From Corallochytrium limacisporum Hawaii (Eukaryota; Protista; Pluriformea): a DNA stretch of 64,000 nucleotides. How positions within the stretch are numbered: position 1 is the first letter of the stretch; every line of letters begins with the position of its first letter. Where the stretch lies: assembly GCA_002811645.1 (NCBI GenBank), contig PDIP01000052.1:107698-171697 (forward strand). Reading direction: 5' to 3'. Shown here piece after piece: positions 23,074 through 26,704 of the stretch. A program made the position numbers and the translations under genes. The notes under the pieces were generated by a model. It did not search any database. It was given only the letters and a program-made list of their open reading frames with translations, and was not told the DNA's origin.

Positions 23074-24094
23074 GTCCCATCATTGAACACACACTGGATC
23101 CGTTAGCGTAAGTCGCATCTTGATCATTGATATACTCTAAGCTTTAAAATATAATGAAGCGGACCCTTATTATAAGCAAATTATACTAAATAGCGTCAGT
23201 ATTTATTTATACGGAGGATTCTAAATTTTATATCCCGTAGTGCAACAATGGAACTCAAGTTGCCATAGACCCAAGCAGCTTTCCGGTTTCCTTACCCCTC
23301 CTCCGCCCCCCGGAGGCAAAGTTTTTCAGAGCGCACCGCGGAGTGGTGGAGTCTCACAGTGGAAAACGAACCCCCCCCCGGGGGAGGGGGGTGGATCCGG
23401 GGACCCCGTGAACGGGCGATGACGAGACTCGGCCACACCGAAGCACATCAATAAATTTCCCTTTGCTTGGAAAAACTCCTGGGTCCCAGGGTAAGAGCCC
23501 AAATCACAAAATCTCAGGCGGGTCGGTGGGGGGGGGGGACTGTGCATAGCCGGCCCGCTAGGGGAACACGGACGGAACAATTTTTCTTCTGGATTTTTTT
23601 TTTCTTTTGGGTCCCAGTGTGCAGGTAGCGGTCCTGCGTAGGAAAGCTGGGGCCGGGGGATGGGGGGGGGTCCCCGAGGCCATAGAAAGGCTACTACCGA
23701 CTGACAGGCCCCCAAACTCCAAAAGCCCAAGGGGGGGGGGGGTGGAGGTGCGGTTCTCCCGGTGGTTGAGCTGGGCAGCAGTGCCAAAAAAGGGTCGCAA
23801 GTAAATGTTGTAACGTACCTATGTTGCACGCTGTTCACATTTTCCTTTGTTTTTGAGATTTTAAACAATTATGTTGTTGCGCACCAAGGATGGTTATTGA
23901 TAGTGTCATGAAGGTATGTAGAAAGCACACGACGGCTATTCTTCACGGTATGGAAATGCTGAGTTAAGTTTGTAACAGAACCAGCACCAGCAAATCAAGA
24001 GAACGCGAGAGTCTCACCCGTGGGGATAGACAAAAGTACACAAGTACAAAATTCAAAAAGCTTAAATTACGATATCGAGATCGAAGAATTAATC

Positions 24095-24692
24095 ATGCCG
24101 GCTATGACAAGTAGTAACAGTAATAGTAATTTGTTAAGTAATTCCCAGGAGGCGGCCATGCTCACCAGCCGCCTCCTGGACAACCAGCCTTCCTGCACCA
24201 TGGCTCGCGCCGCTGAAGAATGCTGGACCTTGGGTGCTGCAAAAGGGTGGTATTCCTGATGTCCGTGTGGATGTACTTGGACCAGATGTTATTGATCAAC
24301 ACTATAGAGTTCTGCGGGGCGCGGACGATGCCGCGAATGACCCAGTGGTGAGTGCGTTCCAGGCAACATTTCACGAAAAAATAGGCCATGGCGTGATTGG
24401 TGAGTGGCAAGTCTTTGTCTCCCAGTCAAAGCGCATGTTCCTGTTTGCGGGTGACAGCTACGACATTACATCGGAATCAAAGGAGAGCCTGGTGGGTCTG
24501 CTGGAGTTTGCGGAACAGACCAAGCTCCACCAAGTCTTTGTCTGCCTGGAGAGGAAGCAGAGTAATGCGGCGAAGTTGCTGAAGGGTCTGCTTTACCTAG
24601 GTTTCAGCTTGGTGTCCCCACGTCGTTCCCGTTTTACGTACAACCAACAGTTTGTCCTCCTGCGTTACAATGTAGGACCCCAGGATTGTTGA
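24095..24692 (+). CDS. OAZ: Ornithine decarboxylase antizyme, translated via a +1 programmed frameshift (ORF1 24095-24256; ORF2 24258-24692; ~198 aa)
   Basis: ORF1 ends TGG TAT TCC TGA T. The +1 frame encodes the antizyme domain SKESLVGLLEFAEQ..HQVFVCL.......LLKGLLYLGFSLVSP and has no ATG near its start. Confidence 0.95.
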
Positions 24693-25618
24693 ACAGGTGT
24701 GACGACAGCGAAGGTGACTAAGATCTTCCGCCCCTTTATCTATTGAATTTGTACCACATGTTCGCATACACACAGGAAGGATACAACATGGAGTCAGCTT
24801 GAGCATATAGATCACCAGTGACACAGAAGAAAGCATGTCCAATGTGTGCCTGATCATCAAGCTGCCATTTACCGCTCTGATTGCCACAATCTTTTTCCTA
24901 TTTATCACTTTAACAACACAGTACACCGGAGTAGGTACCCAACCCTCCATTAGCTAACCCTCTTTCCCTTTGATAGTAAATGTATTGCGTTGATACTCGG
25001 CCCTTTGCTTTTGCAGCCCGGAAAACAACGAGCACGAAAAGAAAAACGCAATCTTTGGCCAAAGTTCCGGGGGCCAGTTTCCCGTGCCTAGAGAACCTTT
25101 GGGGAACGGCCAATGGTGTCACCCGGCAGGCGCGCTTGCAGTAGGGAAGGAGAAGGGGGGTGGTGAGGGGAGAAGGAGTTGCCTCCCTGGCGGCGGGTGG
25201 GCACGTTCAAATTATTTCGGCGCGGATGGTTGGGGGGGGGGGGGCCTACAATTGCCCTCCCCCCCTACCGGGGCAACTGAGGAGATCGATAGCGGAGACG
25301 CCAATGGGAGGAGCGGCGAAAATCAAAGGCCGGCTTGTGTGTTTGGAAGGAGTGGCTGCTGTTTGATGTGACCGTACGTTGCGTGGACTGCAGTGAGAAT
25401 AGAAAAAAGAAAGTCTTCGGATTCGAGTGCGGGTATTTGTATGGATGAACAAAGCAGTCGTCTATTGTGGATCCCCTTATCTCTTTGGTATGTACGTTGA
25501 CAGGAGGTTATGAAGAAAGCCTTAGCCCATTCACAACTCACCATGGGACGGTGATCAGCGAAAAGTTCGCATGACAAGGATCTACGGTCTTAAAAATTCT
25601 CAAGCGTAGCAAATAACT

Positions 25619-26704
25619 ATGGGAGCACAGTACGAATTGAATCAGACATCGTTTTGGATGCTGGCCAACCTGTTGAGCAGTTTGTCAATAGTCATGGTTA
25701 ACAAGGCCTGCTTTGTTAGTTACGGGTTCAACTATCCAACAGTACTGACCTGTGTACACTTCACGGTGACCGCGATATGTCTCAAGGTTTGTGCGGAGAT
25801 GGGAGTTTTCAAGGTAAAAACAGTTGCAATTCCAGAGGTACTCAATCTCTGCGTCTCATTCTGCGGGTTTGTGGTACTGACAAATTTGAGCCTGCGATAC
25901 AATTCAGTCGGGTTTTACCAGCTGGCCAAGGTAATGACAACGCCTGTGATTATTGCAGTCCAGATGTATCATTATAAAAAGAAATTCTCTCGGGAAATCT
26001 TGCTCAGCTTGGCACCCATTATTGTAGGGGTGATTCTGAACGGATCGTTTGACATCCAGCTCAATCTTATAGGAACCTTCTACGCTGCAGCAGGCGTTCT
26101 GAGCACCAGCTTCTACCAGATTTGGGTTGGCACCAAGCAGAAGGATCTCGATATGACGTCAATGCAGCTCCTTTATTACCAGGCTCCCATTAGCGCACTG
26201 ATGCTGGTCGTCGCCGCACCGTTCTTTGACCAAATCCTCGGGCCGGAGGGTCTTCTAAACTATCAGTTTACAACGGGTGCCGTCTTTACTGTGCTGTTGA
26301 GCGGGCTGATCTCGTTCGCAGTCAATCTGAGTATCTTCATGGTCATCGGCAAGACTAGTCCAGTCTCCTATAATGTCCTGGGGCACTTCAAACTCTGCGT
26401 TGTCCTTCTTGGCGGATGGATCGTCTTCCAAGAACAATTGAACTATGTGCAAATGTTCGGCACTGCAATTGCCCTTGGTGGCATCTTCTGGTACACCCAT
26501 CTCAAACTACAGGAGCAAGAACGGGAGAAGCGGGCCAAGGAGAAGGGCAAGATGGCACAGCCCGTCAATGGAAGCCCTACCCCGGGGTCCCAATACATCA
26601 GGACCACCACGAGCGCATCACCCGCACACACGGCCGTCTACCGCAGCGTCAGTGTCAATGACGCTGCAGAGACGATCAACACCGCGCCCTTGCTGCCCAA
26701 ATGA
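25619..26704 (+). CDS. Nucleotide-sugar transporter, TPT/SLC35E family (SLC35E3/plant UXT-like)
   Basis: SIVMVNK, LTNLSLRYNSVGFYQLAK, QLLYYQAP and SPVSYNVLGHFK motifs; about 10 hydrophobic segments. Confidence 0.92.
   Translation: MGAQYELNQTSFWMLANLLSSLSIVMVNKACFVSYGFNYPTVLTCVHFTVTAICLKVCAEMGVFKVKTVAIPEVLNLCVSFCGFVVLTNLSLRYNSVGFYQLAKVMTTPVIIAVQMYHYKKKFSREILLSLAPIIVGVILNGSFDIQLNLIGTFYAAAGVLSTSFYQIWVGTKQKDLDMTSMQLLYYQAPISALMLVVAAPFFDQILGPEGLLNYQFTTGAVFTVLLSGLISFAVNLSIFMVIGKTSPVSYNVLGHFKLCVVLLGGWIVFQEQLNYVQMFGTAIALGGIFWYTHLKLQEQEREKRAKEKGKMAQPVNGSPTPGSQYIRTTTSASPAHTAVYRSVSVNDAAETINTAPLLPK

Follow-up and report, generated by a model that had tools for sequence, protein, structure and literature searches.

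How Corallochytrium limacisporum, an early holozoan with a compact and almost intronless genome (PMC5560861), reads a protein from two overlapping frames, the first of which closes at UGA while the second lacks a start of its own, is the question raised by positions 24095-24692 of the window, by which we mean the whole 64-kb stretch of DNA analysed here. The ribosome may change frame where the two meet, the transcript may be spliced as the public gene model has it, the second frame may be reached by another route, or the sequence itself may be in error. It is confirmed that this is an ordinary polyamine-regulating ornithine decarboxylase (ODC) antizyme gene, laid out for the known +1 frameshift. 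Further, by analogy with the antizyme family, we hold with high confidence that this single ODC antizyme gene of C. limacisporum is decoded through polyamine-stimulated +1 frameshifting.

Two overlapping frames and an antizyme domain

The features of the transcript are as follows.
23966..24094, plus strand: 5' leader with no AUG, from RNA-like contig coverage (X3 from 23966, X4 from 24049)
24095..24259, plus strand: ORF1, 54 codons and UGA, ending TGG TAT TCC TGA T
24245..24253, plus strand: G-W-Y codons of the 5' context (GGG 24245, TGG 24248, TAT 24251)
24254..24260, plus strand: shift site UCC-UGA-U (TCC 24254-24256, TGA 24257-24259)
24258..24692, plus strand: ORF2, the antizyme body of 144 aa in the +1 frame, from DVRVDV to the stop at 24690-24692
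24417..24632, plus strand: ODC_AZ core, residues 54-125 of ORF2, including the conserved Lys (K75) and the LLEFAE helix, from Pfam and alignment to rat/human antizyme
24693..24945, plus strand: 3' UTR as covered by the RNA-like contig X3

The initial annotation, made from the letters alone, had placed the shift codon and the stop at these positions, and the sequence confirms them. The +1 layout that it proposed is likewise borne out, with the skip of T24257 opening the 144-aa frame, and so is its claim that the antizyme domain has no start of its own: the ORF2 frame is open from 24138 but has no AUG before codon 60 (24435), which falls within the ODC_AZ domain and comes after several other AUGs of the transcript. 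The overlapping frames, of 54 + 144 codons, fit the typical antizyme ORF sizes of 60 + 160 codons, and the shift site of rat antizyme 1 is identical (PMC1874602). UCC-UGA-U is the commonest antizyme shift site in animals and many fungi. ORF1 holds four in-frame AUGs (24095, 24104, 24158 and 24200, giving 54, 51, 33 and 19 codons), the last of them in the best Kozak context. Since the leader holds no AUG, 24095 is the first one met, and the transframe protein starting there is predicted to have 198 aa; the contig ends that delimit the leader do not fix the true start of the antizyme mRNA. A W codon followed by any codon, TCC, TGA and a pyrimidine is expected 0.26 times on both strands of the window and was seen twice, the second match lying on the minus strand of an unrelated gene. 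The chance of the pattern is ~2e-6 per position, and ~2e-4 over the ~90 correctly phased positions that precede the sole ODC_AZ domain of the genome.

The protein and domain searches took ORF1 and ORF2 as separate queries, not as a joined protein. ORF1 had no Pfam match, while the antizyme identity proposed for ORF2 stands: it scores 50.6 bits against Pfam ODC_AZ (PF02100), for which the curated cut-off is 24.2, and it matches the fold of solved antizymes. Rat and human antizyme 1 were the sole sequence matches to ORF2 among solved structures. An AlphaFold2 model of ORF2 (mean pLDDT 88.8), made from an alignment (A1) that contained antizyme homologues, with the vertebrate-like P0032 among its rows, has human antizyme 1 bound to ODC as its top Foldseek match (4zgy_B; E 1e-6, rmsd 2.4, TM 0.65/0.74). 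The top four Foldseek matches are all antizymes, and GNAT acetyltransferases rank after them, as expected for the GNAT-like antizyme fold. The human landmarks from K153 to Y216 align in ORF2 (K75, LLEFAE, LGF and a Tyr close to the C-terminus), the conserved Lys lying 75 residues past the shift here and 85 in human antizyme 1. The neighbouring genes, an intronless Sec6 and a TPT-family transporter, have no functional link to antizyme.

A frame of this kind could also be reached mainly by a -2 shift at the same site, from a near-cognate GUG at 24234 or from the internal AUG at 24435. The mammalian cassette does shift mostly by -2 in S. cerevisiae, and a simple +1 shift reportedly does not account for the Capsaspora antizyme. 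However, UCC-UGA in its native mammalian setting directs a +1 shift that was established by sequencing, the GUG lies in poor context downstream of four ORF1 AUGs, and a start at 24435 would drop three predicted beta-strands of the antizyme domain. Such routes to ORF2 therefore appear highly improbable.

The junction in DNA and RNA-like contigs

Logan contigs from one DNA run (X2) and two RNA-like runs (X3, X4) were compared over 23100-25700. X2 spans 23783-25257 and is gap-free at the shift site, X3 spans 23966-24945 with 0 differences and 0 gaps, and X4 spans 24049-25397, colinear across ORF1 and ORF2 with no gap in either. X4 comes from a second strain and carries 12 substitutions over 1346 nt, the sole coding change being synonymous (Val54). 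The RNA nature of X3 and X4 is presumed, as they leave the upstream intergenic stretch uncovered whereas the DNA run X2 covers it. The check for an indel or intron at 24254-24260 that the initial annotation had proposed found none in X2, X3 or X4. The colinearity of X3 and X4 through ORF1 and ORF2 leads us to reject an indel or constitutive splicing at the junction.

It could be argued that the real gene is one ORF, broken here by an assembly error or by a recent single-base insertion that made a pseudogene, given that X2 is possibly the source of the assembly and so is not independent. However, X3 and X4 come from other studies, X4 from another strain, and the junction is the same in all. Moreover, the antizyme is the only one in the genome (assembly 24.1 Mb, 286 contigs), and a random indel would hardly be able to create the canonical site of the antizyme family. 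We put the likelihood of such an error or insertion as next to nil.

The contigs hold other observations around the gene. X3 begins with 23 letters before 23966 that were placed nowhere in 23100-25700; library chimerism, a trans-spliced leader or a distant exon could explain them. An intron-like stretch upstream of the antizyme, at 23914-23978 (GTATGT donor, pyrimidine-AG end), was set aside, as no contig shows a joint for it and the start of X3 lies within it. Both flanking intergenic regions contain G/C homopolymer tracts (23370-23750 and 25220-25260), at which the DNA contigs branch, so that similar tracts recur elsewhere in the genome.

The public gene model raises the question of splicing upstream of the junction.
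24120..24168, plus strand: 49-nt 'intron' of the public model, retained in X3 and X4, with a weak donor

The initial annotation had predicted that gene finders would truncate this gene or invent an intron, and the latter has indeed happened: the public model Clim_evm37s202 (P0001, 182 aa) joins the frames by a 49-nt GT-AG intron, the removal of which reproduces P0001 exactly, with translation entering the ORF2 frame upstream of the UGA. As the stretch is unspliced in both X3 and X4, this intron is most likely a gene-finder artefact. Another protein, P0002, is a repeat protein without relation to this gene.

Were the public model true, antizyme would be made without a frameshift, either always or as a minor, polyamine-independent isoform. 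The splice sites are GT-AG and their use yields an open frame, ORF2 is open for 40 codons upstream of the shift site, and frameshift-free antizymes are known from Tetrahymena (PMC1874602). However, the stretch is still present in X3 and X4, its donor is weak and a branch-like motif is lacking, any of 41 GT-AG pairs would connect the two frames equally well, and Corallochytrium has ~0.0 introns per kb of CDS (PMC5560861). A true intron would also leave the canonical shift site without explanation. Annotation is documented to remove antizyme shift sites in error (PMC1874602), and shift sites are likewise masked in the Diversispora and Syncephalis gene models. We thus consider it very unlikely that the intron is real. 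Rare isoforms are lost from Logan contigs, so a minor spliced form making polyamine-independent antizyme could escape detection there; we judge it less likely than the undescribed 3' stimulator weighed below. On the frameshift reading, the public gene model is to be corrected, its N-terminus and junction not being the true ones.

Signals around the shift site

The UGA followed by U after the shift codon would be a weak termination context, by comparison with known antizymes. Eight further antizyme loci, from widely separated eukaryotes, have the same junction layout, and the 5' context is shared with L005, L006, L007, L008 and L010. Fungal and red algal antizymes show G-W-x-x-UGA, and a glaucophyte shows W-x-x-UGA; ORF1 ends in G-W-F-F in a Galdieria-like locus, Q-W-Y-F in the Cyanophora cluster, G-W-Y-V in Syncephalis and, read across an inferred intron, G-W-R-S in Diversispora. 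In L005, a soil eukaryote antizyme that groups with non-opisthokont protists, a UCC-UGA site (at 143-145) reads K-G-W-C-S / D-V-R, nearly as here. The W-x-S-stop context, which had been called metazoan-like, is therefore not specifically so, and that description was too narrow, as fungal, red algal, glaucophyte and protist-like antizymes share the 5' context. In Diversispora epigaea (L006 1200-1290), the stop codon of ORF1 seems to be interrupted by an intron (TCC T / GA), and the shift site is hidden in the deposited model. Judging from sequence, the G-W-Y codons are probably the proximal 5' stimulator and may correspond to module A of Ivanov and Atkins. In the published view, the proximal 5' module is older than the split of animals, fungi and protists, and the 5' contexts collected here fit this view.

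On the 3' side, the initial annotation had found no strong vertebrate-type pseudoknot, and the follow-up agrees. RNAfold on windows 3' of the shift site gave z-scores of -0.4 to +1.2, no better than shuffles, an Rfam scan returned no antizyme element even at E 10 and nothing near any gathering score, and there is no UCCCU-like element 3' of the UGA. A strong class I/II-type pseudoknot was likewise not found ~3 nt 3' of the stop in Corallochytrium. The weak hairpin that the initial annotation had noted at 24259-24274 can form, but at -3.6 kcal/mol it is not a credible stimulator. A scan for pseudoknots leaves one marginal candidate.
24260..24338, plus strand: candidate pseudoknot, marginal; stem 1 24260-24268/24319-24327, 1-nt hinge, stem 2 24309-24317/24331-24338

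This candidate is unproven. Its stack score in the scan is -29, against -48 and -50 for two class II-like control loci. With coding positions and dinucleotide shuffles as background the empirical p is 0.04, with synonymous recoding it is 0.13, and it lies at 0.06-0.45 when a longer loop 3 is required; the best of these values are optimistic, because the loop limits were chosen after the candidate had been spotted by eye. As to covariation, the second strain (X4) shows no change within the region. It is conceivable, though unlikely, that the frameshift uses an undescribed 3' stimulator, namely this weak, long-loop pseudoknot of class II topology and unrelated sequence, which if true would put the class II architecture before the origin of animals. 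The most likely source of stimulation is the stop context together with G-W-Y-S on the 5' side, without a strong 3' structure.

Two loci, L003 (108-190) and L004 (245-330), have in common a strong class II-like pseudoknot that sits in the same register and shows paired changes in its stem 1, and their antizymes branch at the base of the animal clade. If they are not from animals, the class II-like structure would be older than reported.

Probable polyamine control and the place of the gene among known antizymes

Given what is known of the family, decoding would proceed as follows. Ribosomes initiating at one of the four AUGs of ORF1 would pause when UCC occupies the P site and UGA-U, where termination is slow, the A site. 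When polyamines are scarce the short ORF1 peptide would be released, whereas at high polyamines a share of the ribosomes would skip one U and read GAU (Asp), giving an antizyme of 163-198 aa. The antizyme would then bind ODC monomers, block dimer formation and hand the monomers to the proteasome. The frameshifting and its polyamine control, as well as the ODC binding and proteasomal delivery, are inferred from the antizyme family.

The genome encodes one eukaryotic-type ODC (G000:C22:140922-141638), the catalytic motifs of which are intact (the Lys of AVKCN and the Cys of GPTCD), making it a plausible antizyme target on sequence grounds. A uORF upstream of it (L002 1107-1262, G000:C22), in which an in-frame AUG precedes the stop by 29 codons, ends in F-F-P-R-E-P-S-stop; this Pro-Ser-stop end matches the uORFs of animal ODC homologues, the adjacent prolines of which are absent in Corallochytrium (PMC2811004). 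There is also a bacterial-type Orn/Lys/Arg decarboxylase, in a 988-codon frame (G000:C7:43815-45242; L011, L012). Enzymes of this type are folded differently and would not be targeted by antizyme; this one is a possible antizyme-independent polyamine route.

The antizyme frameshift, the best-known cellular one, was by 2007 on record for nearly 300 species (PMC1874602); the Corallochytrium case adds to a surveyed family and leaves the knowledge of the mechanism unchanged. It does provide one phylogenetic data point. The 2007 survey lists no UCC shift codon among protists, with Capsaspora deviant (PMC1874602), and the presence of the canonical UCC-UGA in a holozoan that branched off early supports its view of this site as ancestral. 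No paper in the searchable literature treats Corallochytrium and antizyme together, although later surveys beyond it may cover both, and the only other unicellular holozoan whose antizyme is discussed there is Capsaspora owczarzaki. Sequence searches recovered no named choanoflagellate, filasterean or ichthyosporean antizyme, a word-indexed protein search for close relatives returned Clim_evm37s202 only, and a metagenome scan for them found none. In a quick tree, from which four vertebrate-like proteins were excluded (P0032, P0041, P0050 and P0052), the Corallochytrium antizyme sits on a long unsupported branch, in no supported clade, and accordingly no claim is made on its origin or transfer. 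Corallochytrium is stably transfectable, which would make a native reporter test practical.

Compared with known systems, the Corallochytrium gene shares UCC-UGA-U with the invertebrate class II antizymes, and its candidate pseudoknot resembles theirs in having stem 1 beside the stop, a long loop 1 and a 1-nt hinge; its stems are much weaker, however, its loop 3 has only 3 nt, and its sequence does not match the L003 and L004 stems. With fungal and protist antizymes that have no known 3' structure (Diversispora, Syncephalis, Galdieria-like, Cyanophora and L005) it shares G-W-x-x-UGA, or Q-W in Cyanophora, although several of these shift at UUU or GUU and Corallochytrium at UCC. Capsaspora owczarzaki, compared by published description, reportedly has an upstream ORF of 6 codons for which no simple +1 shift can account, whereas Corallochytrium is canonical. 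Mammalian OAZ1 has in common with it the UCC-UGA-U site, a W two codons ahead of the Ser, an ORF1 with several in-frame AUGs, the fold and the conserved Lys and LLEFAE helix; identity over the structural alignment is ~22%. Unlike OAZ1, Corallochytrium has no class I pseudoknot, UCCCU element 3' of the stop or upstream Pro-Gly run, and its ORF1 ends in GAAKGWYS where that of human OAZ1 ends in GPGPRWCS.
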